From Thalia democratica (taxonomy: Eukaryota): DNA of 64,000 bases. Of the stretch, positions 10,433 to 64,000 are shown in pieces. The number at the start of each line of letters is the position of its first letter. Positions within the stretch are counted from its first letter, which is position 1. The notes beneath the pieces are model-generated. The model searched no databases. It was not told the DNA's origin and saw only the letters and a program-made list of their open reading frames with translations. A program made the position numbers and the translations under genes. The stretch is from the NCBI GenBank assembly GCA_965202585.1, contig OZ241830.1, positions 72,044,001 through 72,108,000 on the forward strand, given 5' to 3'.

Positions 10433-10455
10433 ATTCTTCCGTAAAAAACTTATCA

Positions 10456-13400
10456 TTACATTTCAAACAAACCCGAGTTTTCTCTGATCCAGTCGCTGAA
10501 TTCGGACACCCTGGTGTAAACCCCGGGACTGCGTGCCCTAGCGCAGTTGAACCCGAAACTGGTGATGCCCTGCAGGTAGTACTTGCCCTGGTCCTCGTTG
10601 AAACAGGCCAGCGGACCGCCGGAATCGCCCTGGCAAGTGTCAACCCCTCCCTCCTCAAAACTGTTTCGCGTAAGGGGATTTTTCGTTAAAAGTAGAAAAC
10701 TTTAGGTTAAAAAACTTTAAACAGTTTTGGTATAGTTATTTTGAGTTTTATTTCCAGTTTCCTATTTACTTTTAGAAACATTTTATTTCATCGTAACTAA
10801 TCGGATTTGAATTAGTTAGTAAAACCAATTTGTTTATATAAATCGTTATTCTTGTTTTTGGTTAAGTTCAGATTTGGATGTATACTTTTTCAGGGTTGTA
10901 AAAATAAATTTAGTCCTTGAATAGATTTAGTATGAAAATATCACTGTTACACAAACTATAAGTGCTAGAAAAGCAAGCCTTCAAGAAATACTCAAAGTTT
11001 TATTAAAGTATCAAGTAATAAAGTATTTAAGCTAAAAAAATTTATTTACAACAGTAGAAGAAAGTACTTTAAGAAAAATATATTTCGTTTTCATAGGTAT
11101 ACTTTCATACTAAGTTTATAAAATATTTGATTACCAAAGCGATAAAAGATTTACAAGTTTGTTGACTCACGAATTTATTCATTAAAAATGCTTAACTCAA
11201 TTAATTAGTTTAACATAATCATCAACTACAAAAACTTTCAAAGGTTAAAATAAAGATCTATGGAATTATTAAGGCTCAGCTTAAGTTTACAAACTAAATC
11301 GTTACATTTGTTGTTACTATCAAATTTAATTATAACTGTACGATAAAAGATTTTTAAAAACTAAATATGTTTCAACATACTAGCATACCAAGTTAGTATT
11401 CTATAACAACAAAACACATGTTCTTTTACATTAGCACACAATCAACTTGTAATTTTTGTAGTTTTAGTTACCTTTATAGACAAGCTTTTTCACAGTCGTT
11501 ATAAATGTAAAACAAAATTAAATGAAGTATAAGTTTTACAACTTTTTCAACTCACATGTTTTTAATTGATTAAATGAACTTATTTTTCCACAAGCCTTAT
11601 TTACGGTTTTGAACGCGAAATTATTACACGGTCAGTCAAGCGTGTGATGCGGTCGTTTAAAAATAAATTTACTATTTCATCTCACGGTGTAAAAATTCGG
11701 AAACTTAATTGTGAAAAGTTGATAGAACTTAAATTTTTTTTTTAACTCTTTTTATTAAAAAACAGTTTAAGCAGTTTTTTAAAAAAAATTTGTATACAAT
11801 TTACAAACGAACCCGGCACACATGAAAACATCGACGACCCTTATGGCCCTAAGGAACCTCTGACACCTGAAATTGCTCAGTATTGGGACGTTTGCGTGTT
11901 GAAGTACACTGGGTGTCGTAGAGCTTGTTTCTAAAGTGAACACTTTTTGTTATATGTTTTCGCGTGAAAATATTTCACAAATATCTTAACTTTTATACCG
12001 ATGTCAGTCTGAGTTTAAATCATTGTCTTGTTTTTAATTCTATAAATTATACAAAGCAGCTTACATTGTACACAAAAAAAGTTTTAGGACAAAAAGCTTG
12101 ATTGAAAAAATATTTCAAAAATAAAACAAATCTTCTAACCATCGGTGGTTCCCCAACCGCTGATGACGCAAGACTTCCCCACAGTGACGTCACTCCCCTG
12201 CGGAGGAACAGAGATGTTTCTGACCAACGAGTTGAAAGTTGCGGGTCTGTCCAGGAAGAGAAGCGCGATGTCGTTCTCAAGCGTTGTCGGGTTGTAATCT
12301 GAAACAACTTATTTATATGAAATAATTAAAACTTTTAAAGTAATCTTTTTTTAAAATCTTTTGAATTAAAAAAAAAACTTGTTGCTATTGTTTTTGTATA
12401 ATTTGTTTTGGTTTTATTAAAATTCAGTCAAGTATTACATACGATGTTTTATTTTCAAATATTAATCCGGTCGTAATCTGAAACAACTTATAAAATAAAT
12501 TATTTGTTTCAAACTATTAAATTTTAACTAAGTTTTTTAAACAACTTAAAACTTGTTTATGTACAATTTGAATTTGAATTTTTTTGAAATTCCATAAGTA
12601 TTACGTTATATGTTTTCTTGTTAAATACTAACAAATATTTTGTAATTTATCTACAAGTTAAATGGGTTTGTTTTTGTAAAAAATTTTACTAGTTGCGTAA
12701 GTTTTGTAAAAGTCTTTGGAATTTAGCTTTACTTTCCAAGATTAATTTTAAATCAGTGCACCTTTTATTGAAATTTAGATAAATGGGTGTGCTTGTATAA
12801 AGGTTAGTGATTACATGAAATTGCATTTATAAGCATTTTTTCTAAAGGTCAAGTTGCTTTATAGAGACATGTTTCGATTTTATACTTGAAAATGGACACA
12901 GCTCATCACTTTAGTTACTTTTTTATAGAACAGTTGTGAAAGTTTAAACTAGTAAACAAAACCACTTAACCTTTATGCTCTATTTTCAGGTCAACGAAGA
13001 AGCTCTGCCCGATGTCCCTTCTTCTGTTTGTAACTCCCAGTGAAATCCTCATTCTAGAAGCAGGTGTCCTGTGAAAACAAAAAATTTAAGAAATATAAGT
13101 GTCAGTTTTCGAGAGATAACACTTTTGTTTATTGTTTTCATAATTTAAAGAAAACTTTCTAAAGTGTTATATTAGTTTTAACTTTTCGTATGTTAAGATT
13201 AGGTTTAGTTAAAAAAGTAAATTGGTAGCCCTATTTAATAAGGAAAATAGCGTATCTTTTTCGGTAAGTAACAAAATTTCAACTCCTTTTGTGTAAGTAT
13301 GTTGAAATGTGTAAGCTTTTAATAATTTTTATTAGTCCTTTTTTGCCAAACATATAAATACTAAAGAAATTATACGAATAAATGCGTGCTCATTTTTGAA

Positions 13401-16400
13401 ATAAGCTTATAAAATCAAAAGCTTCGTTTGTAAATCAGAATTTTACTTTGGTCGTTATCAAATTCAGTTTGGCCCTTACCAACTTTAATTTAACCTTTAA
13501 TACCTAGAAAGTATTTTTTAGTTTTCTTTGTTAAAGTAAACTAAACTTAATTTCGAATTATTTCAAGTGCTTTATATTTTGTTGTTTTAAATTTAATATC
13601 ATCACAAACGTTTTTATACTTATAAAAGAAAACTTTTCAAGGATTAATAAGTTAACAACTTGAAATTATTGTACTTTAAAAAAAAATAATTTTCTAATAC
13701 TTTCATAATTTTACAGTTATTATAGGTATAAAACAAAAAACTTGTTTAAATTTAAGTAGAAAACTGTGTCAATCAAAACTGAAGAGTGTTAAATTTTTTT
13801 AAACTTGATGAAAACTAGAGAGCATTTTGTTATCCATTTAAAGTAACAGCTACTTTAGAAACAGAAACTAAAAACTTTATATAACTAGAAGAAGGAAAAT
13901 TCACAAAAAATAATTCACTAAATAGTTCCCTAAAAATTAAAAGTTACATTTTAATATATAGGCTTCTTTTTTCAAAATGATACTCTAACTTGAAACTTTT
14001 AGACTAATAAAATATTTTGATTAAAAAGTAAATGTCAAAACTGTCAAAAGAAATGTTTTTATTGACCTGTTAAAACAAAGCTTGTTAGGAAAACAGCCAT
14101 AAAAGATAGGAACAAGCTTTAAACTCTAAAAGCTAAAAAATTATTTAAAGACTAAAAATTTAAACTAAAAGCAAGGAATCAAAATACTTGGAGAGCTTTA
14201 TATTTTTTAAAAGTTAATATTTTCAAACATTTAGTCAGTAATAGTAGTGCTTGATAATATCAAAACATTATACGAATATTGTACAAATAGTTGTGTATAT
14301 ATTTACTTATAAGTACTCACTGAAAAGTTTACGCAATAAAACTATAAGTTACGATAACTAACTGTGATTTGAAATTCTAATTTCCATAGTTTTTATCTTA
14401 CAATTCCAAAAACTTTATTTTAGTAAAGCTTTCCAGCTATTTTTTTAGTGGTAATACGATTTTAACGCAGAGAAGCTTTCTCAAACTTTCAAATCAACAG
14501 TTTATAAACTCACTCTAAATTCAAGTTTAAAGGTGTTATTTTACCGAAACTTGACTAAAGTTGAAGTGCATTCTACATAATTATCTTAATTATTACCTAA
14601 ATTTAAGTATAATGTTTTAAAATAACGTTTCGATTTAAAAATATTTAGACTTATAAAGTATTTAATTAAAGAGCAAATGTCAAAGCTGTCTAAAGAAATA
14701 TTTTATTGTTCCGTAAAAACAAAGCTTGTTACGTCAAACATTCAAAAATAGGAACAAAGCTTAAATTTCAAAAGGGTGTAAAAACAAAAAATTTAAACCA
14801 AAGTATGGAATAAAGTTGCTTGAAAAGTGTTTGTGTTCTGCAAATTTATTTTCACACATTTAAAAATAAGTTATTGTAATGTTCGACTATATAAAAACTT
14901 TTAATAAATATTGTACAACTAAATTTATATATACTTTCTCTTAAGTATTCATTGTAAGGTTGATGTGACAAAACTATAAACTACTATGACTAACTAAAAT
15001 AAAAAAATTTATATTCATAACTTCTATCTTACAATTATAAATATTTTATTCATCTAAAACGTTTTAGCTATTTTTTATCAGTGGAGAAACGATTTTTGGT
15101 GTAAAGTTTAAAGCAAGGTTTTCCAAAGTAGGCCACGACAGATACTCAGGGGCCATGAGCAGCAAAGGGGGCCATCTCGTCATAATTCGAAACTTACTAT
15201 AGATATTCTGGAGTTGCTGATGAAGAGCAAAAAATAAGAAATAAAAGTCTTAGGTTTTTTTATGGTAGTTTTTGAGAAATTTGGTACAAGGGGGCCATAG
15301 CTTTTCTAATTTCTTTAAAGTTTTAATTTCTTTAAAGCCATTTGAATAAAAGTTCGGGAAACCCCCGTTTATTTCTTAAAATTTAAAATTTGAAACTTTC
15401 AGTTGCAAACTAACTCGATGGTGCAGTGGGCCGCGGTCAACACCCACCTCGGGGAAATCACCGAGCAACCGCACAACCCGCCAGTGGTCGCCCTGTACAA
15501 GCATTGCCATGGAAACATGCCCGGTGACGCTTCACTGCCCCCGATGATCCTCGGGTTTCCCGCCAAATCGAAACTTTCATTTTTCGAACTCGTTTCTGTG
15601 GTGATCAAAATTTTAGACATTTTTAAAAACAAACATATTTTAATATTTACGTAAATTATGGATGTTAAATTAAATTGGAAGTGTTTTTGAAAATAAAAGT
15701 AAAAACAACTTTCCTTTGTAAAATAAGTTAAACACTTAAGATAACTTAAAGCTGTTTTGTTGTTGCACATAAAATATATAACGATAATCGAATTTAAGGC
15801 TTGAGTAAGTTATAATAGTTGTTGTACAATCGATAATGTTTTCGGGACACCTAAATAAATTGTAATCATACTTTAAACTTGAAGTATATATTTCTTTGCT
15901 TTTAAGTTTCTGACTATGTTTAAAACCTAATTCATATATGATAACATTTTTTAACTTAAAAACGTTGATCCATAGTACATTAGTTTTACTACAAAAATAA
16001 ACTAAAGACTTGAAATTTTTAATAACCACATAAACATTAGCGTTAGTTTAAATGAAAAGACAGGCACTTTAATTTAAACAGTTTATCATATAACTTTCTT
16101 TACTGCATCAACAAGTAAGCTTTTAAGTTTTTCATTATAAAATTAGTAAATATGACAATATATTACCATAATCTTTGTATAACTTAAGACACAAATGTTA
16201 TTAATAAGGTACTACTTTATTTAAAGTTAGAATTTCTTTTTTTTTTTTTGATTATATAAGTATGATCATAAATATGACAAGTTGACTGGTGTTATTACTA
16301 CTGTCTACATGTCACAAGTTAAAAAAGAAATAAGATATCATTAGTAGTTATAATTAGTACTTTGTTAAGACAGAAACAAACTAAAAAGTATAAAATACAG

Positions 16401-26508: not shown

Positions 26509-27792
26509 TTCTAGGAGTAAAGTGAATAAAAACTCCAATTTAAATTTATTTTTCCAATACAAGACTTTATTAAATTGTATTAAATTAGCTAAAAATTATA
26601 TAAAAACACACACAATTTCCAATAGGAACAGTTTATTTTGAATAAAAATTAACTTGATAATTTTACATTTTTTAAAAGAGTACAAATATTCAAAGTGTAG
26701 GCTTATCAGAATTTAAAAAAATTGCTATAAAGCAGCGAAAATGTGTAAAAACTCACAAAAAAAATACTGTTTATTTTCAACCAACATCAACAATGGTGCG
26801 AAAACAAAACGGACAATGTTGAAATTGAAAGCATAGATAGAACGAAAGCACTTGGTCGAATTTGTTCACTTTTAACACCGGCAGCTAACATTTGAACTTG
26901 ACTACATTTTTGTCACTGTGAGACATGTATTGTGACAAAACTTCATTCGCAACTGCACTTTTTTAACCATTATTAACACACATGCAAATTCATTTGATAA
27001 ACCCTCCGCCTGGACTTTGCGACAACTCATTGCTTTTTTAATTGACTTCATAAATGGTCAACCAAAGTAAAATGGTAAACTATAATGCCTTAAAATATCA
27101 TTCTCCTGATTAGTGACTAAATTGAGAAAAAACATGGATAATTTTCATAAAGTGATCGATTACTACCAAGGAATTACATATATAAATCCACATACAACCG
27201 TGTTCTTAAAAATAAACATACACAAACTTTTTAGAAATCTTCGTCACACACATCACTTGCTGTCTAAGAAGAAAGTACAAAAGTGAAACCACTGTTTAGT
27301 ATGACTGTGCTTGAGAAATTGCAACAAATTTGTCAAAGAAAAAAAAAACGAAAGTTTTGTTCAGGAATTTCATTCAGGTAAGAGAGACGGTCTGTATAGA
27401 AGCACCGCGTTTGTTAGTAGCTTTTACAGGTAAAAAGTTAACTTTAAAATATTTGATTCTGAATGCTCTTTTAAATAGAGAACTTGCCAGGTGTTAAGAA
27501 TAGCGAGTAGTTTGGAAGGAGTTTGCAGCAAAGAGAAATCATATCAGACATCAAAAATACTTATAAAAAGCAAAAAAAAAGCATTATTAACTTGGAATTA
27601 CTGACATGATGTTTAAAAACTGCTTATAAAACAAAAGAATAAATAGACAAGTTAACAAAAAAGTAAAGGTGTTCTTCAAAATATTTTTCAACGTATTCAT
27701 GAACCAATTCAAAGTGAAGTTCAATTTAAACGTAAAAAGTGAAGAAGCATGAATAAATCTTGATATTTTTAATTTTTATTTTGCTGAATCAC

Positions 27793-30700
27793 CAATCTCT
27801 TCATCGCTTCCAGTTGTTCCTGCATGCGTTGGATCTGAAAAGTTAATAAGTTTGAATATTTCATTCTCTGTTTTGTGCCAAACAGTATTATAACTATTTA
27901 GGTTATTTTAATATGTTAAAGTTAAACAGCTTGGTTGTAACAAAAGTAACATTTAACTGCCAATTGGTAATACTAGATGCCTGTGTAACAGTTGTAAAAA
28001 GTCACATGACAACAGAACCTTTTATAAGTTAGTTAAAAATAATAACTTTGAAATATGATGAAAAGTTTAAGCTTTTTTTAGAAAAAAAACTTAAAAATGT
28101 TCTAACCTCGAGATTTTTGGCTTCGAGAGCAGATGCAGGGTCCACAGGAGCGCTGCTGTTGTTAAAATTTTAATTAATATTACCATGAGTAAGTTGGCAT
28201 GAATAAAGCTGATTCAATCAAGTTAAGATGTCAAAGTTATAGTTTCAAAACTTCAAGTAAATTACACTCAACTTAATAATACTGTATACTGAATGAATAT
28301 CTATGGATAACATTCTTTTTTAAAGGTAAACTAATATTCATTATCAAACTAACAGCTCGGGATCTTCGTTTTGCAGCTTGTCTGCTCTGTACTTCTCGTA
28401 CAGAATGTCGTGCGTCACCTCCTGCAGATCCTGCATGTGGGTCCTGATCAAATAAAAAAATAACTGTTAGATATTTGTTGATAATCTAATAGATGTATAT
28501 GATAAGTTTAAAATTTATTTTGTCGAGAAGTAACTTAAAATACACACAAAATATTTACATAGTAATGAGATTTCAAATTTTATCTCATTTGGTTATAAAA
28601 AAATACATAAATCATTTAATTCAAATTTAATTAAAAAACCAGCCTAAACTGATTACCGACAACCAACATTGGTCAGCAACAAACTAAAACTAACACCAGT
28701 ATTATAAATATAAGTTTGAAATAACTTTAAATTTTATTTTGTGGAGAAACGACAACAAAGCAAACAAATTGAAAACTAACACCAGCATTTGACGCAGGTG
28801 AACGAAATCGGAATGCTTGCCGTCTTCAATTTCGATGATTCCCCACGGGTATTCCCTGGCGCGAACCTTCCTGCCTTCCTTCTCCACCAGCGTCGTCGAC
28901 CCCACCACCGCAAACGGAACTTGTTTCTGCGATTTGATAATTTGTATAACTATAATTAGATTGTATAAATTACTTTATCACTAAAATATTTAATGTAAAA
29001 GCCAAACTTACATTGACGCTTTCAAAGTGTTTTTGAGAACCGTTTCAACTTTTATAAAACTGTTATTCCCTCGACAAAAGCATGGAGAATAAAAAATATA
29101 AAAGTTCAACTGTAACATCAATTTGCAAACACGTATTTTTCATAAAACGAGTAAAATACTATTCAAACTAAAACATTCAGCATTTTCGCTTTCAAAATTT
29201 GTTTTAGTGTTTTTGAGAATCATACCAGCTCTGATTAAAATATGCATTACTCTCCAGTTACCATGAAAAATTAAAAAAGTAAACTAATTTTATTCTTTAG
29301 TAGCACTAGACTACATAAATTAACAAATACTCATTCAAACTAAAACCTTCAGCAAGTTAGTCTACCGTCAGGTTTCGATTCCTGAGTCTAACATTGCACA
29401 ATAAACAATATAATAATAACAATAAAACACTACCTTCAGCAAGTTTGTCTGCTGCTTGAAAGCTTCGTCCTCGTCATCGTCGGCGTCCGGGAGGCAGTAG
29501 ACGCTGATGTCGTTCCTCGCCACGTCCTCCATCACGTTCCGCTTCAGCCGCATGAGCTCCTGCTTGGTCAGCATGTCCGCCTTGCCGATCACCGGCACGA
29601 TGTTCACTTTGTCGTGCACCGCGCGCATGAACGCCACGTCTAATGGTTTCAACCTGTGTGACGTCATAAAGGTTGAAACAGCGAAATTTGGTTGAGTTTT
29701 ACGTTGGATCAACTTAATGTGTTGATATGTGGTAAGAGTTATGAATGTTGGTAGTCAGAACCTTACAGACTTTATTTTTTTTTTTTAAATATTAAATATA
29801 TAACATTTAGTAATAAAATCAATTGAAGACGTAAAAAGTACAGTTTGAAACAGATTGTGGTAAGAGATTAAATGTTTTTTTGAGGATAAAGATGTTAATT
29901 TTGGGCAAATAATGGCTTAATGAGAAAACGTTAACAAAAACTGTTTAAATAGCTAACAACTAAAAAACTAACTTATTATTTTCAAAACAACTTGTAAAAT
30001 TTAAATGTCTGTCTATTTGAAAAACAATATAACTTTTTTTTGTAACTTTTTTTATAAACTTTTCTTGCTTTCAAGCAAATGAGTATCATAGTATTGAATT
30101 CAAACAAGTTTTATTAAACAGTAAAAAAGCATCATTTGGATGAAAACTTTTTATTCTAAATTAGTGTAAAAAACACTTTATACACATTTTTGTGTAAATA
30201 AACTTCTGTAACGTTTATATATTTATATAAAAAAATTAAGAACAACACATATAAAAATACTTATATAAATAGTTGAAACATTTAAACAGCCAAAACCAAA
30301 AACTTCCTTCAAGTTTTTTATAAAAATTATGTTTTGAATATATAAAAATAAAACTTCAAGTACTAATAAAAACAGTTTAACTGTATAGCAGTTACACGAG
30401 GTTATTTTTAACATGATGTTTTACCGCCTGTGAAAAGCAAACAGATATTTTCACAATACATTTTGTTTGCTGTACAAACAAAAACTGTCTGCTCTACTTT
30501 GTTTAAAGAGAAACTTTTCGACTTACTGTAAAACATATGATCTGGTCATGAAAAAATTATGGATATTATTTGAGCTTAATGTTTAAAAAATTTTGGAAAA
30601 ACCAGAAAATGTTTAATTTAATATTTGAACCGTGAAACGAAATTAAGTCTTAAGTAAACAGCAAATTAATCTGTATAAATATTCGTATAAAATATTAAAC

Positions 30701-33700
30701 TCTGAAAATACAGAAAAATTTCAACATAATTTTCAGGAACAACAAGCAATGCATTTTAAGTCGGCTGAAGTCACTATGTATAACAATACCAAGTATTGAA
30801 ACCCAAAATCTTATGTTTTTCTTTACAAAAAATTTAGACTTAAAAGTAAATTGCTATGCTTCAACAACATTTTCATAATATTCAATTTATTTAAACTTGT
30901 ATTCATTAACTAAACTCCTGATTTAAATTAAAAAAATAACAATTTTGACTTTTTTTAATTTTAAGGAGTAGTGTTAATAAATGTTTTATATGGAGTTTTT
31001 TAATTTATAAGAAATTGTTTTCCCGCTTAAAATAACTTATTAAGACACAAAATTTGGCTTTATATTAATAACTATCAATTTAGCAATCATCATTTATAAA
31101 GCTATAATATAGTTTGCAAGATAAACTAATTTGCTATTATAGAAATATGAATTTTAGCCTCAACTTATCTTTTAAGATGTACACAGCAAACAAAAGTTTA
31201 CTGATGATTAAACAAATGCGTTTGTTAATGCTTTCTGAACTGTTTAAATTTATTTTAAAGTAATGTTTGCGTAGCAATTACCAAATCGGCTGACCACTTT
31301 ACCTTGCCATTAGTGATTCAAAATATGCTGGAATAATATATATGTTTATTTACTTAAAAATCAAACTTGCAACATTTTAGCAAAGGTAGTTTTAATATAC
31401 ACCATATTAATTTTGTTTGCATAAATTAGATTCTGTTTAAATTTAAAATCTTATAAATTTCAACTTTTATTGCTACGTTAAAAATCGTAAAAATTATGAT
31501 GAGGTGTTTGTTGGCTTTTTTTAGAACTTTTTAGAAAAAAGCAAACAGACCTTCAATAAATCATTGTTGAGAGAAAAATCAAGAAGTTTAAACAGTGCTG
31601 ATTTAAGAGAAAACATCTGCAAAAGCTGGTTTTTAAAATACCTTTGATTTGAGCTCCAGCTTAAGCCTTGAGTGCTTTCGAAATCAAATTGATTAGATAT
31701 CATTAGACCCTTGTAATTAGGGGAAACACAAAGAAAGGGTGAGATACCATTCACACATGAGTTACCTTCAAAAAGACCTTGGTAATTGTGACCGGTTTTG
31801 ATCATTTAAAACTATTAACAGATTTTGTGATTTGCAACTGAAGTTTTTCGGTGTAGACCAACTTGAGATGGGAGTTTTTTTAATTAAAATTAAATTGAAC
31901 GTTATATTGAAATTGCTTAATTGTCACAGCATTGGTAACTTCAAAATATTAAAGAAGTAAAAATATTAAAGCACTACCGAAACATGCTTGAAAGGCACAT
32001 TTAAAATTTTGATTTTCCACAGAGCATCATTTTGGCGTTAGAGGACTAAATTGATAGAATGGAGAATTTCTTTCCTGATGTGACGGATTGCACTAACGTA
32101 GGGGAATGTGGAATTATTGTTTTAGTGAATATGTAAGTGCAATTATGTGTATTAGCAAACGGCGCGTTTTCTTCCAAATATTATACTTTACAACTTAAAT
32201 ATTTTAAAAGAACTGAACCTTTTTGACAAACTACTTGGAAATTTAAATTTTCAATAAATGAAAAACATGGTTCTTTTGAATATTACGTCACTAATTGCTT
32301 TTCTTGTATCAATTTAACAAGCTTTTTGATGAAATTGACAATTTGTACAACCTTTTATTTTTTGTATAATATACATGATTTAACTTTTTCTGTGTAAATT
32401 ACTAGATACTTTAAAGGGGTAAAAAAGTTTAAGGAATTTGTTGAGATACAAGGCAACAAAGAAATTAGTTCAAGATTCTCCGTAGGCAAAACGCAAACAA
32501 AAGTTATGTGAAAAATATTAAAAAAATTAAGTATTAGTCTACCACTATTAGCAACCGGTTTTCAAGCAATCGCGTTCAAAGTCTTAAAAAGTTTTTAGCT
32601 ACCTTTTTTATTTAAAACTTATTTTGTCATAGCATTTATAGTTAAAAAATATTTTCTATATGTTTCTAATTTTTACCTTAACTATTAAGAAGTAATTTAT
32701 CAAGTAAACTATTAGAAACTTGAAGATGAAAAGAAATATTTAGAGAAAAAAAAAGTTTTACTATAACAAATATTTCAAAAGAACTTTTTTATATTTAACG
32801 CTTTTTTTTTAATATTAAATATAATGGTTTTTTCAATACAATTTTGTTTTTAAAGAGTTTAATCTTTGTTTTGTTAGTTTTTTTTAAACATGTCGCCTGC
32901 GAAGATTTGTTTGTAATATTTAGAACTGGAAAAGTTTTTTTGTAAATCTGGTCTGCTGAACCACTACACCAACAGTTAGAAAGTCACTGTTAGAAACCTC
33001 ATACAAGAAACAGGGTAACTAACCCCCGCGAACTGCTGGAAATGAAGTAGAAGCAGCAGTGCACCCTGGTGTCCGTGATGTGCCTCCTGTTGAAACCTCT
33101 CTCCTCTTTCAGGTAGGCGTCCATCTGCGCGCTTATGTACTCCACTATCGGCGTGTAGCTGCGTGAATGTTTATCGAATTACAACATTGTTTTATTCTAA
33201 ACCGGGGTTTCCCCTGTGGGTCAAACGGTAGGGGGCTATTATTTGAATAGATAACCTGGAGGTGATGATGAGGAGAAAAAAAAAAGTTTTAGGCATATTT
33301 AACATAAGTTTTTTTTTATTGATGGGTGCCATAGCTTCATTTATTTCTTCATAGGCGGCTTATGAAAAAAAATTTTGGGAAACCCTGATGTGAACCATCA
33401 CTTAACCTAATGCATATCAACTAAAATAAAACAAACACAAACCACTTGGTTCAAAACAGATCATTCAATTCAACCAACCACTTGGTGCTGTCAAGCAATT
33501 AATTAATATTTTTTAACTCTATAAAAACTGGCTTGTAGTTTGTACTTCAAGCTTTCATATAAGGTCCAATGTTATTTTAAGTGTCCCCTATGCCCTTATA
33601 CTAGTTTATATTCAACCAACCACTTGGTGCTGTCGAGAGCCCTGCCGAAGCCGGGCGTGTCGACGATGTTCAGCCGCAGCTTGACTCCCCGCTCCTCGAT

Positions 33701-36700
33701 GTCCTCGCTCCTCACCTCTATGCTGCACGTGCTCTCCATGCTGTCTTCGATGTCGGGAAGTTCCCTGCCCTGATACATGTTGGTCAGGAACAGCGAGTTG
33801 ACCAGGGTGGATTTGCCCAGGCCGGATTCGCCTGTTGGTACGATATAGAATTAAATTTACCTTTTTTATTGTGAAGAAATTGGATTTATTTTGAAACCAA
33901 AATTTTTATTTGTTAAATGGTTACTTGTTAGTCTTAGCAATTTTATTTTAAAGAAAAAAATAATAATTTTAACCTTTTATCTCTTAGCTATCGATTGTAG
34001 TAGACATTTTTTTTAGCCCGGTGAAAAATATATTTTACATTACTGGGGTTTTCAATTACGAGCTTTATTGTACTTCACATAATTTTAACTTAAACTAAAG
34101 CATCATGTTTTATAATTTAAAAAGCTATGCAAAACTGTATGTGCATAGGTAATAATATTTTTTGATTTTACATTAAACAGTAGCAATAAATATAAAAAAA
34201 ATTTAAATAAGAATTACCTTGCTTGGAAGTTTACCAAAAAACTAAAAAGTTGTGCTGTAATAGTTAGTTTTTTAATACTTTTTTCTTATACTCCTTACAT
34301 CATTCTTTAACATAAAATATCTTATATAAAAATACTGTTTTTGAATATATTTTAACTTTTTCCAAACCCAAGTTATCAATCCCAAGTTATTTATTATCTA
34401 TAACCAGATTAAGCTATACTCAATCATAAACACATACCAAACTTACAACACAACTGACACAAACTAACTGCATTTTTTATCATTAAAAACATACTCAATT
34501 AACAAAAACAAGCACACATACCGGCCACCATGAGAGTGAACTCGAAACCCTTCTTGACGGATTTCCTGTGAACCTGGTTGGGAAGGCTGGCGAAACCCAC
34601 GTACGCCCTGGACGGTTCCCTCTTCACACCGCCTCCGCTTGTCTGTAATGTGTAAAAAGTATTGTTAACTTGCTTTATATATTTTTATTTAAACAAAAAG
34701 TAAAATCTATTTCAGCTAACGCTTATCAACTACTTTTGTTAGCAACTAATTTTATAAATAAACTTTGAGTAAATAAACAGTTAGAGGTTTCATAAGAAAA
34801 TACTCAATTAATTTATGCAGTTTAATAATTACTGTTAGTTCAAGTTTTATCAATGTGGTCGTGTGTTTGTTATTGAAAAATAATAATAAATTAGAGTGAA
34901 AAGCAAGCTTTAAAATTATATAAGTTTCTCAGGTGTATCTTTTTTATTTACCTGTACTCTGTACAATATATCTATCACCTACATTGGCAATTTATATTAT
35001 TTTTAACTACATTAACATGCTTGTTGATCGTAATCTACATTCTTCTTAAATTGAAGTAACTGTAAACCAATAAAAAAATAATATGTATTGAAAGTATTAT
35101 GTCATAAACTAAAAAATCTAGCAATCAAGAGTACTTATATTATCTTTATGACATTTAAAGTATTAAATTTTTATAATTTTAAAGCACATCTAAAGACAAT
35201 AAGTTGGGTTTTTTGACATAAACTTTAAAAGAAAATATTTAGCTAGAAGCTTTAGTTAAAAGTTATGTTTTTCTCTAATTACATGCGTGATAGACAGATG
35301 AAAATATTTACACAAATATTATCTGAATGAGTAATCCAAAAGCAATCTGCGTAATGTCACGCAGAAAAATTTTAATTGTAGATGGGTGTTGCAACTTTTA
35401 AATATCAACTTTTTTGTAGTAACTTTGACAACAATTTTTAAAATGTTAGCTAACTCAATATAAATAAATCTTCGTTTAATATAGCTTATGATAAATTAGT
35501 TAAAACTTTTTGAGTACTGATTGTGAAGTATAAAAAAATTTATTATTGATATTCAACTTAAATATTTAATATGAATACCAATTGAACTGTTTTTTAAACA
35601 TTTACTTGTTAACTCAGGCAGTTTTTCAAGTGCTAAAACAGCTAAAAAGAAACAAGTTTAAGTTAATAATTTTTATAACAACATGTATTAAAGTTTATTG
35701 CTTTATTACTTTTATTTATGTTCTAATTTATCTTAATTTTATTCAACTAATTTTTCAACTTACTTTATTGACTTGCAAAGTATTCATGACCTAATTCAGT
35801 TTCTTGATTATAACACTTAATCAACTTTCTTTAAATAAATTTAATTTAATTGCATGATAATAAAATCAAACTATAAAAGAGCTTATAATTAGAAATTTTA
35901 TCTTTTAATTTTAGAACGCTTATCTCAACAACTTAAAAAGACTAAAAAAGTGTTATATAAAGTTGTTATTTGAATATACTTTTCTGAAAAATAAAATACA
36001 AAAACATATTTTTGTTTAAACTCTGAAAGAAAAATTCTGAAATGAAAAATTTAAAATAAAATACCTGCTGACCAGCTCATAACTTATACAGACATTGTAA
36101 TAAACAACAACTAGATAAAGTATTACTAACAAAAGAAAATTTACATTAGAAAAAAAGAACTTAAACAACACTAATCACATAATCACTGATTAACAAATCA
36201 ATCACTTTTCAATAAATTAAAACAGCTATAGAGAGCTTAAACTACTTAAAAGTAATTAGCATACTGTTTTTTAAAGCTTTAAATTCACATTCAACTAGAC
36301 TAAACAAAAAGTTTCTTAATGCAGTTTGGTATGTTTCTATTAATTTTTCTTTCAAACTTTCTCACTCTAGGAAGTTGCGCGAGTGACGGTTTCCTTATTC
36401 GGTTTCTCCAATATACTTTTTCAAATACAAAATGTTGATGACTGCTACCTTTCTTGAAAAATAAGCAGTTTTTTAAGTGCTTTCATACGCTGCCGCAAAA
36501 GACAATGGCTTTGAAACTTTTTTCTTTCTGAAATATATATCTTCGACAGAAGCACTTGCAAGCTCTTTTGTTGCTGAACTTTTATGCTCTATTGTTTATA
36601 AACTTTTTTTCGAGTTGCATGATTATTATAAGTATGTTTGAAGACAAGGGTGTTTAGTATGATAAAGTAATACATGACATATATATTTTTATTTATCATT

Positions 36701-39700
36701 TGATAAATTGTATTGACACAATATAAAAATTATTACTGTTGAAAATATCTGTTTCTGAAATTGAATAACTTTTTTATTGGAGATCATACAAAACATTAAA
36801 AGTACCTTTAATTATTTTCTTAGGGTTTTTATAATCTCGTATCTCAAATCAAAAACTATTCTTTACTTAACTGCCTAAAAACTTCTAATTTTTTTCTAAA
36901 AGTTCTTAACTGAAGGTTATTAAAAACAAGTGCGTTTAATTTCAATGCATGCTCGTCAAAAGTTAAAACTGAATGAAAGGTGTTAGTGCTAAACTCAAGT
37001 AGCAGTAGCTCTTTTTTTTATGACGACACGAGCAAAAAACACGATCATTGTGACGTAATACAAGACCTTATTTGGTTGTAAACAGTTCGGTTGTGATGGT
37101 TACAACAAGATAATCAAGATAATCTTTTAATGCTTGATTACAACTGCTTATAGCATGTATCAATACTTTAATTATGGGATTTGTTGTTTAAACTCATCAA
37201 GGTGTCTTGCTGATGTCAAAACAGATTAAAATAAAATTCGTTGTAAAAATTTGAATTTTAACAAACTTTTTTTTTTCAACTCTCAAAAATCAAGCTAACT
37301 TGTGCTGTGAAAATATCATTACTAAAATGTATTAATGGAAAAAAGGCATGTTATTTATTGAAAGTTAATAAGCGGTCTATTTTCTAAGGTAAGAAAATGT
37401 AACACGTTGACTCTTTTGAACTTTAAAAGATGTTTTGTTAACACGTACAAAGCAAAAGAGTTTAACAAAAAATCGTTGTTGAAATAATAGATAAAAATAA
37501 CCTTTGTTTGAACCAGTCACAAAGTAAAAACCTTTTTATTAAATGACAACTTTGTAAACTTTGTTGAGCTGAAATTACTTTGAACTCAAAGAAAACTCAG
37601 TAAAAAATTATTTCAATACTATATCATAAACACCTTGATAAAAAATTATATCAAATAAAGCTAAATTGACAATTACAAGTTAATGCAAATGTTACTTCTT
37701 ATAATTTTTAAAGCATTTATAATCAATTACATAATCTGTTACAAGCTTTGTACCATCTAAAATAGTATTTTTATGAATTGAGTAAAATAAAAGTGGAAAT
37801 GACTATTTTATTTCGAAGTTATTTACTAAAAAAACAAACCTTAGTTTAATAATGACAAATTAAACCAAAACATCAAGGATGTTTTTATAAAAACATGACC
37901 TTCGAAGAGTACTTAGTAAAAGTCAATCAGAATTATTTGAATGACAAACTTTTTTAATTTCTGATTGTATTTTGCAAACAAATATCCCAAATCTAAAAAC
38001 TAATGTCACTATACTTAATTTTTCTAATTTCTATATACCTAATTAACAACTATGTAAATAAGACTGTTTAATTATAAGAGTTAATTATTTTATTACATGT
38101 TAAATCCGTATAACAATATGAGCAATAAATTTAATAAATTTTAAACTTATTACAAGAAATTTTGAACACGTATTATAAACATTTTATGCATAATTAACTT
38201 TAAATCGAACATTTTTGGCATTTGCGAATTTTATATTAAGGCAGCTGTATTTGTACAGAGGTCGTGTGTATTGCAATTTGCTTTAAAACCGCTCTCAAAC
38301 ACCATTCGAAATTGAGACCATCGAAACTTATTAGTGGGTTTTAAGTGCTGTAAACCAACAACTCAAATAAACTTTTTATGATGTAAAATACTTTTACAAA
38401 CAGTCATACTGATTGATTAAAATCTTTAAATATTTTCTATCTATAAAAAGCGCTTAATTTATTAAAGTTTACAGTATTTTTGTATTAACACAATATTACA
38501 TTTTTTGTTAAAACACATTAATGTTTAACTTAAAACAAAAGTAAATTGTTTGTAATATTTAACAGCAACTTTTTGTTAAGTTTATCACTTTGTGAAATTT
38601 AATAAAACACAAATTAAAGTCTAATTTATTTAATTAGAAAACTATTCTTATGTAAAATTAAGAAAAAAAACAAACTTAAAGATAAATGCCTATGTTATAT
38701 TGTTTTGCAACAGTTTAAGTATATATTTAAATAACGAAATATTAAAAACATAAACTTACTAATTGAAAGATTGTTTAAAACTATGATAAAATAATATTTT
38801 CAATATTTTTTTAACGTTTCAATTACAACATTTACTGCTTAGTGCGACCAAACTTCTTAAAGTGCAGCTGATTTTTTTTACAGAACTGTTTTTTTTACAG
38901 TAATTAAACTGTCATAGAAAGAAAAGTCTCACCAGATTTTTGTTGACGGCTTGCTGAGGCGTGGCAGCAAACGAAACCTCGTTCTTGCTTTTGATTGGCT
39001 GCCCATCGTCGCAACTCTCATCCTGATTGGTCAGCACCGTCCTCGCAGCGGGCTTGGGATTTTCAGCTCGTTTGGCAGGAACGGGATCGGACATTCTGGC
39101 CGTTTCGGCTTCCTGCGCGGCAATTTGCAGCGTCTTCTTCTTCCTTTCTATCTCCTTGCGCTCCTCTCGCAATCTCCTGCCTCTTTCTTCGAGTATTCCT
39201 GTGAAAAAGTTTAATATGAAATTAAGGTATACTATCTAAATCCACCCGCGTTTAAAATCCATTCGATTGATTTTTTTTTTTTTTCTATGCATCCTCTTTA
39301 TTTTTTGTTTATTTTTTACTATCACTGTTACACCTAACCCTTACCCTCGATCGTTAAGCGGTTCTTGAATTTGACTTGGTGGATTTTGATCGGGTGGATT
39401 TTGATCGGGTGGATTTTGAATGCGTCCCGAAATTAATACACCTCTACATTAGAAAAGGTGAAATAAAAAAAATAACTTTATTTTAATAAAGTTTGTTGAA
39501 TGCTTTGAAGTTTAGTTTTTTCTTTTTGAATAGACCGACATCCGTTAAAATATTTTCGTTTTTCTTTTTTTATACCTAGAACTTTCCATGTTAATTTAGT
39601 AATTTTACGTACAATTTGTTAGTAACAAATTATTTAATTTTAAGTTTTTTTAGTTAATATAAAAACTTAAATATATAACGACTAATGAAATATTTTTTAC

Positions 39701-60748: not shown

Positions 60749-63700
60749 TCAATCTTGGAGCTTCAGTTGGGCAAACTTGGTGGCGATTTCCACGGCTTCC
60801 TCGACCCGGTCCACACCGCTCCCGTTGGTCGACGCCATCACGTCCTTGCCGCCGGGTTTTCCCCCGACGTGCGAAGCGATCTCGCTCACCCAATCGACGG
60901 CCTTCATTTTGCCGGTCATCGACTTGGGCACCTGCGACTTGCACACGACCTTGGTCTGGTTCTTGCTGAACAGCATGACGCAGGTCTCCTTCTTCTTGTA
61001 CAGCTTCATCACCTCCATCAGCGACTTGTCGTCGCCGTTCACCGAGTTCACTTCCACCACCACCACCCTCTCGTCCGGGTTCTCCTCCATCCTGCGCTTG
61101 AACATCTCCACCGCCTCCTTCTTCAGCTTCTCCTTCTCCGCCTTGTCCATCTTGCTCAAGTCCTTGGCCATCTGGTCGCACCTGGCCCGCATCCGGTCCT
61201 TCTGCCACTTGGCCACCAGCGCCTCGCCGTCCACGTCCTTCTTGAACTCGGTGATCATCCCGTATACCTCCTTAACCTTCTTCTCCCGCTGAGCCGTCTC
61301 CTTCATCGCCTCGATCGCCACCAGCCGCCGCTGCAGCTCGGCGCTGTTCTCGTCGGCCCGGCGCGCCACCTCGCCCGTGACCGCCACCATGCGGCGGATG
61401 CCCTTCGAGATGGCCTCCTCGGCGGTGATGACCAGCCGCTTGGCGTCTCGCGAGTTCAAGAGGTGCGTGCCGCCGCAAAACTCGACCGAGTTGTTGAGGG
61501 CGTGGTCGGCGGTGGGGTCCTTCAGGAGCTGCTCGACCGGAACGCCCACCGACACCACCCGCACCGGGTCCGGGTAGGTCTCGTCGAACACGGCCCTCAG
61601 ACCGTTGACGGCCTTGGCCTCGCTCAGCTTGGACAGCTCCGCGTAGACGGGGCATTCTTTGTCGATGACCTGTGAATGAATTTTTTAATTAATCATTTAC
61701 TTGATGGTAGTTTTAAATAGTATGTTTAAATAGATGGTAGTAGTTTCACATATCACTGTATCGGATAATTTATTAGAAAGTTCTTTTAATCAGAAACAAA
61801 CCTGGTTGCATATTTCTTCCGTTTTTTGAATTTGATCCGTAGTCAAAGCTTTGTTGGCAGTGAAATCAAACCTTAAAAATGATCAATTTTCAGAAACATT
61901 TCAAACTTCAAATTTTACAACAACAAAACGTGTAATCAACAAAAATTATAATCAATTAAAACCTCAATCTGTCGTAGTCGACCAACGATCCTTTCTGGTC
62001 GGCCTCGCCCAACACCTGCCTCAGCCCGAAGTTGAGGATGTGGGTGGAGGTGTGGTTCCGCATCACGTCCATGCGCCTCGCCTCGTTTATCTTCAGCTCC
62101 ACGCGGTCGCCCACCCTCAGGTTACCCATCACCTTGCCCACGTGCAGCACGTAGCCCCCTTGAACCTGGCAGTTTTCCACCCGCAAAAAGCACGTGTCGT
62201 CGTCCGTCCTGCTGATGAAGCCCACGTCGTATATCTGCCCTCCCTGCTCCGCGTAGAAGCACGTCCTGTCCAACATCACCCCGCACTCCCATCCCTCCTC
62301 CACCTCCTTGACGAACTGCTTGTCGTGGCGCAGGTTGGTGATCTCGGCGGTGATCGACTCGAACCGGTAGCTCTCCTCGCCCTCCACCCGCCGGTAGTTG
62401 TACTTGAAAGAGGCGTCGGTGGCCGGGAAGTTTTCGTTCTTGAGCTCGCTGAGCGCGTGCACGTCCAGCTTGACCTGCTCGGCCACCGTGTTCACCTTGC
62501 CCTTGGAAAGCTCCCTGGCCTTCTCCTTCTCGGCCTCGTACTCCGCGCAGTCCACCGTCAGGCCCCTCTCGCCCGCCATCAGCTCGGTCAGGTCGGCGGG
62601 GAACCCGTAGGTTTCAAATAGCAGCCAGGCCTTCTGGCCCGGGAAAACGGTGGCGTCCCGGGGCAGCTCGTTCACCACCCTGTTGAACACCCGCTCGCCC
62701 CTGGTCAGGGTCCTGAGGAAGAGCACCTCCTCTTCGTCGATGACGTCTTTGACGTGCTTGGGGTTCTTCTTGATCTCGGGGAAAGCATCGCCCAGCACTT
62801 CGACCACGGTGTCGACCAGGCTGGAAAACATTCCCGGCTTGGCGTTCAGCTTGTCCTTGGCGTACCTGACGGCGCGCCTGAGGATGCGGCGCAGCACGTA
62901 TCCCCTGCCCTGGTTGTCCGGCATGCCGCCGTCGGACAGGGCGATGGTCAGGGTGCGGATGTGGTCGGCCAGCACCCTGTAGGCCATGTCCTTGTTGCCC
63001 ACGTCCTCTTCGCCGAACAAGCCGGTGTACGGCTCGGCGCCGGTCATGTCCTGGATGGCTTTGAAGAAGGGAACGAACAGGTCGGTGTCGTAGTTGGAAC
63101 TCTTTCCCTGGATGACCGAGACGATCCTTTCGAGGCCCATGCCGGTGTCAACGTGCGTGTTGGCCAGCGGCTTGAGCGACTTGTCCGCCTCGCGATTGAA
63201 CTGCATGAACACCAGGTTCCAGATTTCCAAAACGTCCGGGTCGTCCTTGTTGACCAGGTCGGCGGCGTTTCTCCCGCCGATCCGGTCAAAGTGAAGCTCC
63301 GAGCAGGGACCGCACGGTCCGACTTCTCCCATCTCCCAGAAGTTGTCCTTCATGTCCCCGGTCAGCACGTGGCTCGGGGGCAGGTACTTCAGCCAGGCGT
63401 CCCTGGCTTCAAGATCCGGTTTCAGGCCGGCCGCCTCGTTCCCTTCGAAATAGGTGGCGTACAAGCGGTCCCCGGGCACCTTGTACACTTCGGTGAGCAG
63501 CTGCCACGCCCAGTCGATGGCCTCCTTTTTAAAGTAGTCGCCGAAGGACCAGCTGCCGAGCATCTCGAAGAACGTGTGGTGGTAGTTGTCCTTGCCGACG
63601 TCGTCGAGGTCGTTGTGCTTCCCGCCCGCCCGGATGCACTTCTGCGAGTTGACGGCGCGCCTGTACGCGTAGTAGGGGTTGGACGGGTCGATGGTGCCCA

Positions 63701-63860
63701 GGAATATGTTCTTGAACTGGTTCATGCCGGCGTTGGCGAACAGCAGCGTGGGGTCGTTGTGCGGGATGGTGCGCGAGGAGTGGACGTAGTTGTGCTCGTT
63801 CCGCTTGAAGAAGTCGATGAAGATATCGCGGATCTGACCCGAAGTCAGCGTGGCGTCCAT
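60749..63860 (-). CDS. AARS1: Cytosolic alanyl-tRNA synthetase, 3 coding exons, 962 aa
   Basis: Exons: 63860-61963 ([23 protein letters not shown]...ANAGMNQFK...DTGMGLER), 61871-61802 ([23 protein letters not shown]), 61669-60749 ([18 protein letters not shown]...EFCGGTH...C-Ala). The editing motifs HTSTH and CGGTH are present. Total 2889 nt, GT-AG introns of 91 and 132 nt. Confidence 0.97.
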
Positions 63861-64000
63861 TTTTAAATGAGTATTATGGTATATCACTGTGTAAGTTTAT
63901 TTTGTATTGAAAAATAAATAGTAGCTTTCAGGACAATTTTAAAACTTTTGTATTAAAGTAAAACTCTTTATTAATATTAAATTATATATTTTTATATTTC

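Follow-up and report, generated by a model that had tools for sequence, protein, structure and literature searches.

The question raised by this locus is what a septin does once several residues that face its neighbor across the G interface have been replaced while most of the protein has been kept. The gene lies on the minus strand of a 64,000-nucleotide stretch of the Thalia democratica genome (assembly GCA_965202585.1, contig OZ241830.1, positions 72,044,001 to 72,108,000), hereafter the window, to which all coordinates refer. In its product, here called the divergent septin, switch II reads DTPGFGR, with Arg at residue 107, and trans loop 1 reads FISSSSRG, with Arg at residue 158, followed by LKP from the next exon. 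A preliminary description, made from the sequence, regarded the protein as a specialized SEPT2-group paralogue that caps filaments, lacks a G-partner or uses a novel partner. The divergent septin is a specialized paralogue and not a new kind of protein, because most of its changes have precedents. With moderate confidence, we favor the view that it is an alternative subunit for the SEPT2 slot of septin filaments, encoded by a lineage-restricted and fast-evolved duplicate of the tunicate SEPT2 orthologue.

The septin core is encoded by six exons with AG/GT borders throughout. Exon A (34522-34642) carries the α0 helix and polybasic region 1, and exon B (33621-33831; Pfam Septin E = 2.8e-18) carries the P-loop GESGLGKST, an acidic switch I with Thr78 and the G3/switch II motif. 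Within exon B, the codon for Ile71 in switch I, where Ala71 is characteristic of the SEPT2 subgroup, lies at 33749-33751, and the AGG codon for Arg107, where canonical septins have Asp, is read on the minus strand at 33641-33643. Exon C (33024-33158) contains α2, the Sep1 and Sep2 motifs and trans loop 1, including the CGG codon (33026-33028) for Arg158, a position occupied by His in most septins; the following intron (donor GTTAGT) splits the Gly codon after Arg158. Exon D (29434-29653) encodes LKPLD, the G4 motif VIGKADML with T186M, trans loop 2 with Glu191 and the polyacidic region. The septin unique element with VRAREYPWG, in which G255A is found next to the retained R256, W260 and H270, is in exon E (28781-28926), and helix α6 is in exon F (28354-28443), which has the same donor, GTTAGT, as exons C and E. 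When spliced, these exons form an open core of 307 amino acids with a GC content at third codon positions (GC3) of 0.81. Because every core exon matches the Pfam Septin family (PF00735) above the cut-off, at E = 1e-16 to 1e-20, the septin identity of the gene is far beyond chance. The nucleotide-binding motifs of the family, G1 (P-loop), G3 and G4 (GKAD), are all present, as are the septin unique element and the Sep1 and Sep2 motifs, including Arg256, Trp260 and KHSDF with His270.

Four public sequencing runs contain the locus (aligned over 28700-34650), and no run recorded as RNA contains it. One of the four, X3, derives from a second sample of the same organism, and its kind is unrecorded. 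This run covers exon bins only, and a single contig in it joins 29653 to 33024, 33158 to 33621 and 33831 to 34522, which are exactly the predicted exon borders. The spliced contig has no differences over exons B and C, so that both Arg codons, that of Arg158 included, are present in spliced form. X3 is read as complementary DNA because its coverage is confined to exons, its contigs skip the introns, the splice joints are absent from the deep DNA runs X1, X2 and X4, and no intronless copy was found in a search of the genome. A second X3 contig is the messenger RNA of the canonical SEPT2 paralogue described below, its loose end encoding YGDAINCKDC; therefore, both SEPT2-type genes are transcribed in that sample.

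In runs X1-X3, the sequenced animal shows two haplotypes of the gene, in a ratio of about 45:55 (measured at 29517-29653 and 33683-33723). They differ by up to 8% in exon D (11 of 137 bases), and both forms are found in X3 contigs; run X4, labeled as another organism (organism B), has the second form alone. The haplotype differences listed for exon B are all synonymous except S80T, and none of the listed differences falls at either of the two Arg codons. Beyond this genome, exon-level searches against clusters of 90% identity returned one relative at 99% for exon B, and relatives at 90% and 83% for exon D. A Tara Oceans contig (L033, P0151) has 90% nucleotide identity over exon B with a single amino-acid change, and keeps R107 as AGG; over 89 codons, its synonymous divergence (dS) from the divergent septin is 0.56 and the ratio of nonsynonymous to synonymous divergence (dN/dS) is 0.017. 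The exon D relatives, from marine metagenomes (P0275 and P0276; protein identity 90% and 83%), both keep VIGKADML, and dN/dS against them is 0.17 and 0.06, respectively. The search of the same clusters with exon C gave no candidate; the evidence for R158 therefore comes from this genome only. A phmmer search with exon B against 1.84 billion cluster representatives gave none above 65% identity, although these represent clusters of 50% identity, so that absence is not shown, and two degenerate DNA pattern scans of metagenome contigs of the Joint Genome Institute, one of them for Y-x-ISSxxRGLKPLD, had no matches. By these dN/dS values, the divergent copy is under purifying selection.

The genome (801 Mb) contains five septin loci, namely a canonical SEPT2-type gene, one gene each of the SEPT6, SEPT7 and SEPT3/9 types, and the divergent copy. 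The canonical SEPT2-type gene, on contig 9, encodes DTPGYGD, FISASGHG, AKSD and VRGRLYPWG and is 80% identical to vertebrate SEPT2, and its intron positions and phases are identical to those of the divergent gene. The exons of the divergent copy reach only about 60% identity with the full-length septins fetched, and for every exon searched the closest solved structures are those of Ciona Septin-2 (CiSeptin-2), human SEPT2 or fly Sep1. In a maximum-likelihood tree, the divergent copy falls within the SEPT2 clade (support 97/93), together with vertebrate SEPT2, a Mytilus SEPT2B-like protein and the canonical paralogue. It adjoins the canonical paralogue with support of 78/38, so that the sister relationship is weakly supported, and its end branch is roughly seven-fold longer (0.96 versus 0.13). 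The canonical paralogue elsewhere in the genome, the splicing of the divergent copy, the purifying selection and the long branch bear out the preliminary description in calling the gene a specialized paralogue. Its proposal of a novel partner with compensatory acidic residues fared otherwise, because no such partner is found among the five loci. The first exon of the single SEPT6-type gene is 93% identical to that of Ciona Septin-6, with an identical switch I, and the protein keeps the P-loop Thr, the switch I His and, at the trans loop 1 Ser site, a Thr as in human SEPT10. Since the only SEPT6-type gene is canonical, there is no co-evolved partner with reciprocal changes.

Residue states were assigned in human SEPT2 numbering, which was checked by alignment to a mammalian SEPT2. 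In this alignment, the substitutions D107R, P155S, F156S, G157S, H158R, T186M and G255A listed by the preliminary description are all correct, as is the retention of F20, T78, E133, R138, D185, E191, R256, W260 and H270. That list did not include A71I or the acidification of switch I, the net charge of which is -7 as against 0 in the canonical SEPT2 paralogue of the same genome, Lys74 and Arg77 having been lost and acidic residues gained. Of 137 sites invariant across seven canonical SEPT2 proteins, 26 differ in the divergent copy, including four of nine in switch I, one of 19 in α0, none of nine in the P-loop and none of four in G4. An enrichment of changes on the G face (16 of 64 invariant sites, versus 10 of 73 elsewhere) is not significant (Fisher p = 0.13), and the changes appear notable for the sites they hit rather than for their number.

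Several of the substitutions turn out to be ordinary states of other septins. Residues 155-156 are A-S in the canonical paralogue of this genome and S-Q in Ciona; Mytilus has Ser at 156 and keeps P155. Because changes at 155 and 156 are common to canonical tunicate SEPT2 proteins, P155S and F156S represent the background of the lineage. A choanoflagellate septin and a Tara transcript also have T186M, and mammalian SEPT1 normally has Arg at 158 (FISPFGRGL). Of the seven substitutions listed by the preliminary description, P155S, F156S, T186M and H158R are therefore not special. Arg107 is the sole Arg at its site among about 220 septins fetched, of which about 93% have Asp, a few have Glu, one has Val and one has Asn. 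Of the residues characteristic of the SEPT2 subgroup according to Rosa et al. (2020), namely Ala71, Phe156 and Gly159, the divergent septin keeps Gly159 and has Ile71 and Ser156. Phe156, however, defines the vertebrate set only, and is absent from the canonical non-vertebrate SEPT2 proteins compared (Ser in this genome and in Mytilus, Gln in Ciona). All seven canonical SEPT2 sequences compared have Ala71, the loss of which is therefore a real departure. As judged from the alignments, the real departures are D107R, A71I, G157S, G255A and the acidic switch I.

Published contacts indicate what these positions do. H158 touches the α/β-phosphate of the partner's nucleotide (10.1101/2023.04.22.537027; PMC8640212), and in yeast Cdc10, Lys155 at the same site contacts the guanosine triphosphate (GTP) of Cdc3 (10.1101/2023.04.22.537027). 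The trans loop 1 Ser of a SEPT6-group partner donates a hydrogen bond to the main chain of D107, the side chain of Asp106, the equivalent residue in SEPT11, positions the P-loop Thr within the same subunit, Ala71 fits a pocket of the SEPT6 partner, and switch I of one subunit meets trans loop 1 of the other across the G interface (Rosa et al., 10.1101/2020.07.08.161463). The preliminary description had taken D107 and H158 to be partners of each other across the G interface. A cross-interface pair of this kind is not described in these three sources on septin interfaces (10.1101/2023.04.22.537027; PMC8640212; 10.1101/2020.07.08.161463), in which H158 contacts the partner's nucleotide and D107 contacts the SEPT6 Ser through its main chain.

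The closest well-characterized relatives are human SEPT2 (2QA5, 2QAG, 6UPQ) and Ciona intestinalis Septin-2, which was solved in a hexamer with Septin-6 and Septin-7 (PDB 9BHT; Mendonca et al., 2024, J Mol Biol 436:168693). The divergent septin resembles them in subgroup, G-domain motifs and septin unique element, but is only about 60% identical and differs in Arg107, Ser157-Arg158, Ile71, Ala255 and the acidic switch I. Pro155 and Phe156 are likewise missing from Ciona Septin-2 (FISSQGH), although its structure was obtained within that complex. Mammalian SEPT1 is likewise a SEPT2-subgroup paralogue with Arg158 and VIGKAD; however, it keeps Asp107, Pro155, Phe156 and Gly157 and belongs to another clade of the tree, and on these sequences its likeness to the divergent septin at Arg158 is convergent. 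Yeast Cdc10 shares the presence of a basic residue in place of the trans-loop His, Lys155, which reaches the GTP of the partner (10.1101/2023.04.22.537027), although Cdc10 belongs to another subgroup and occupies the central position of the octamer. In the arginine-finger septins of algae and protists, such as Chlamydomonas, an Arg in the Sep2-Sep3 loop reaches the nucleotide pocket of the partner, and the ancestral position of the finger is adjacent to His158 (PMC11238149). In the divergent septin, the Arg occupies the His position itself, one residue from the finger position, where a Ser is found; a catalytic role is putative, and a role of Arg158 at the partner's γ-phosphate is conceivable.

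From the gene structure, splicing into RNA, selection, paralogy and residue states established above, we infer a partner, a filament position and a functional consequence. Everything needed to bind and probably to hydrolyze GTP appears to be kept: G1, G3, G4 and Thr78, the catalytic switch I residue that distinguishes the SEPT2 subgroup from the SEPT6 subgroup. The α0 helix and polybasic region of the NC interface are retained and, with the Sep1 and Sep2 motifs, indicate by sequence that the NC face is kept; the G-face core likewise retains Gly159 and Lys161 alongside Glu191, Arg256, Trp260 and His270. The retention of nucleotide binding, of the NC face and of the G-face core under strong selection argues for a continued filament role in the SEPT2 slot. 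In the favored model, a duplicate of the tunicate SEPT2 gene would have evolved quickly and then been held by purifying selection, and its product would occupy the terminal slot, that of SEPT2, in septin hexamers or octamers. There, the one canonical SEPT6-type subunit may be its partner on the G face, and either a second copy or canonical SEPT2 its partner on the NC face. The specificity rim of the G face would be remodeled by the acidic switch I with Ile71, by Arg107 in switch II and by Ser157-Arg158 in trans loop 1, while Arg158 probably still touches the phosphates of the partner's nucleotide, as do His158 of SEPT2 and Lys155 of Cdc10. Switch I lost positive charge, and positions 107 and 158 of the same face gained it; the charge may therefore have been relocated and the face not simply disrupted. 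The predicted result is a changed affinity or selectivity at an interface of the SEPT2-SEPT6 type, and possibly filaments that behave differently in a particular cell type or stage. Alternative terminal subunits change filament behavior elsewhere, as with Shs1 versus Cdc11 in yeast and SEPT1/4/5 versus SEPT2 in vertebrates. These cases are functional analogies to the divergent septin and not homologies, and interchangeability is putative here.

Other explanations of the locus have to be weighed against this model. That the changes reflect an artefact, a private allele or a decaying pseudogene is highly improbable: no support for it was found, apart from the low identity, about 60%, between the exons and the full-length septins fetched, and the frame is intact over nine exons and spliced into RNA. 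R107 is also kept in the independent ocean sample, at the divergence and dN/dS given above, with two further relatives, and both haplotypes of the animal are present, the listed changes of exon B being synonymous apart from S80T. For exons B-D, the spliced RNA, the relatives and the dN/dS values exclude sequencing error, a private allele and neutral decay, the outcomes that the preliminary description named as contrary to its view; the checks that it proposed on dN/dS, on conservation of R107 and for a canonical SEPT2 gene also came out in favor of a specialized paralogue, whereas that for a SEPT6-group partner with reciprocal changes found only the canonical gene with the switch I of Ciona. 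The proposal of the preliminary description that the G interface is impaired, so that the protein would be a filament cap or terminator or an orphan outside filaments, draws on the location of D107R, A71I and G157S in elements that become ordered on partner binding and on a charge reversal at 107 that is unique among the septins sampled. It is nevertheless a minor possibility, because the core residues of the G face named above, from Gly159 to His270, are kept under strong purifying selection and because H158R, or another basic residue at 158, is functional elsewhere. Moreover, SEPT2 uses its G face to enter the SEPT2-6-7 rod and its NC face to meet other rods; with a dead G face, the protein would therefore be left out of the rod altogether instead of capping it. 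Filament capping or the lack of a G-partner looks unlikely, given that the core residues of both the G and NC interfaces are kept in the sequence.

A self-pairing septin is about equally improbable. In this scheme, the acidic switch I would face the Arg158-bearing trans loop 1 of a second copy, and G-homodimers or homopolymers would replace SEPT6-type pairing. The contact of switch I with trans loop 1 across the G interface (Rosa et al.), the change in net charge of switch I from 0 to -7, accompanied by one new Arg in each of trans loop 1 and switch II, the SEPT6-type partner without a matching change and the loss of Ala71, which fits the SEPT6 pocket, are all consistent with it. On the other hand, pairing of the switch II regions at the two-fold axis would bring two Arg107 residues close together, all core residues common to heterotypic interfaces are kept, and mammalian SEPT1 has R158 yet is classed as a SEPT2-slot subunit. 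The model of an alternative SEPT2-slot subunit itself has points that count against it: the charge reversal at residue 107 is without precedent among the approximately 220 septins sampled, A71I and G157S could weaken pairing rather than tune it, and the evidence is at the level of gene and RNA, the protein-level role being predicted. In addition, the RNA evidence spans exons A-D only, exon E being without X3 coverage, although coverage holes prove nothing.

Septin assembly depends on the choice of neighbors, and the rim formed by switch I and trans loop 1 at the SEPT2-SEPT6 interface is thought to hold the specificity of this choice. With one gene per septin subgroup and an expressed, selected second SEPT2 with a changed rim, this genome offers a compact natural experiment, in which two paralogues set against the same SEPT6-type partner bear on the roles of Ala71, Asp107, Gly157 and His158 in pairing. 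If the changes on the G face formed one coordinated redesign, they would represent a natural re-engineering of septin partner choice in a minimal chordate septin set; such a redesign is improbable. For now, the gene counts as a divergent paralogue from a fast-evolving lineage, with precedents for most of its individual changes.

A planktonic SEPT2-like septin from a Tara metatranscriptome (P0108; SSCGRG, VRAR) was considered as an orthologue and rejected, because it is 53% identical to the divergent copy and 51% to canonical SEPT2. The joining of the two in the tree was flagged as long-branch attraction, and P0108 is treated as an independent divergent septin. It corresponds to contig L034 of Logan ERR1739838, is expressed, and carries VISSCGRGLKPLD; with KAD of G4 changed to FGD and YPWG to HISG, its G face is more degenerate than that of the divergent copy.

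The ends of the divergent gene are predicted. A first coding exon (38933-39094; MSDPVPAKR...AVNKNL) with its ATG at 39094-39092 and donor GTGAGA is an open frame in phase with exon A; it rests on frame and splice signals, and the true start is possibly further upstream. At the other end, predicted exon G (28107-28155), in phase with exon F and with an AG acceptor and a GTTAGA donor, and predicted last exon H (27769-27834), also in phase and followed by the stop, would together encode a short C-terminal helix, about 25 residues long and heptad-like in pattern. A homology search with the C-terminal exons had no matches, exons G and H resting on frame and splice signals; exon H, we presume, resembles the ELRRMQEM segment of SEPT2. 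With these three exons added, the frame remains intact over nine exons and closes at 399 amino acids. The window is AT-rich (28% GC) and the septin exons are GC-rich, as are exons across the window (GC3 of about 0.8, versus about 28% GC in introns and the window overall), and donors are often GTTAGT.

In the intron between exons B and C (33467-33640), a duplication of about 28 bases of the exon B donor junction brackets an insert, the central approximately 84 bases of which belong to a dispersed repeat. More than 1,600 candidate copies, 93-95% identical, are spread over the genome, and the depth of the DNA runs is very high there. Because the insert is such a repeat and is absent from the intron of the Tara relative, the donor duplication looks like a by-product of mobile-element insertion. 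In the spliced X3 contig, 33621 is followed immediately by 33158, and this transcript thus makes no use of a microexon. A second bin, at 29297-29495 and immediately downstream of exon D, has very high depth (about 1e5) in all DNA runs and is presumably another high-copy intron repeat. Elsewhere in the window, GC-rich exons at about 10450-15600 on the minus strand encode a trypsin-like serine protease (IIGGSEA...WVLTAAHC, GDSGGPLAC...GITSFG), and large GC-rich open frames of 643 and 280 amino acids at 60749-63887, also on the minus strand, belong to an alanyl-tRNA synthetase-like gene.

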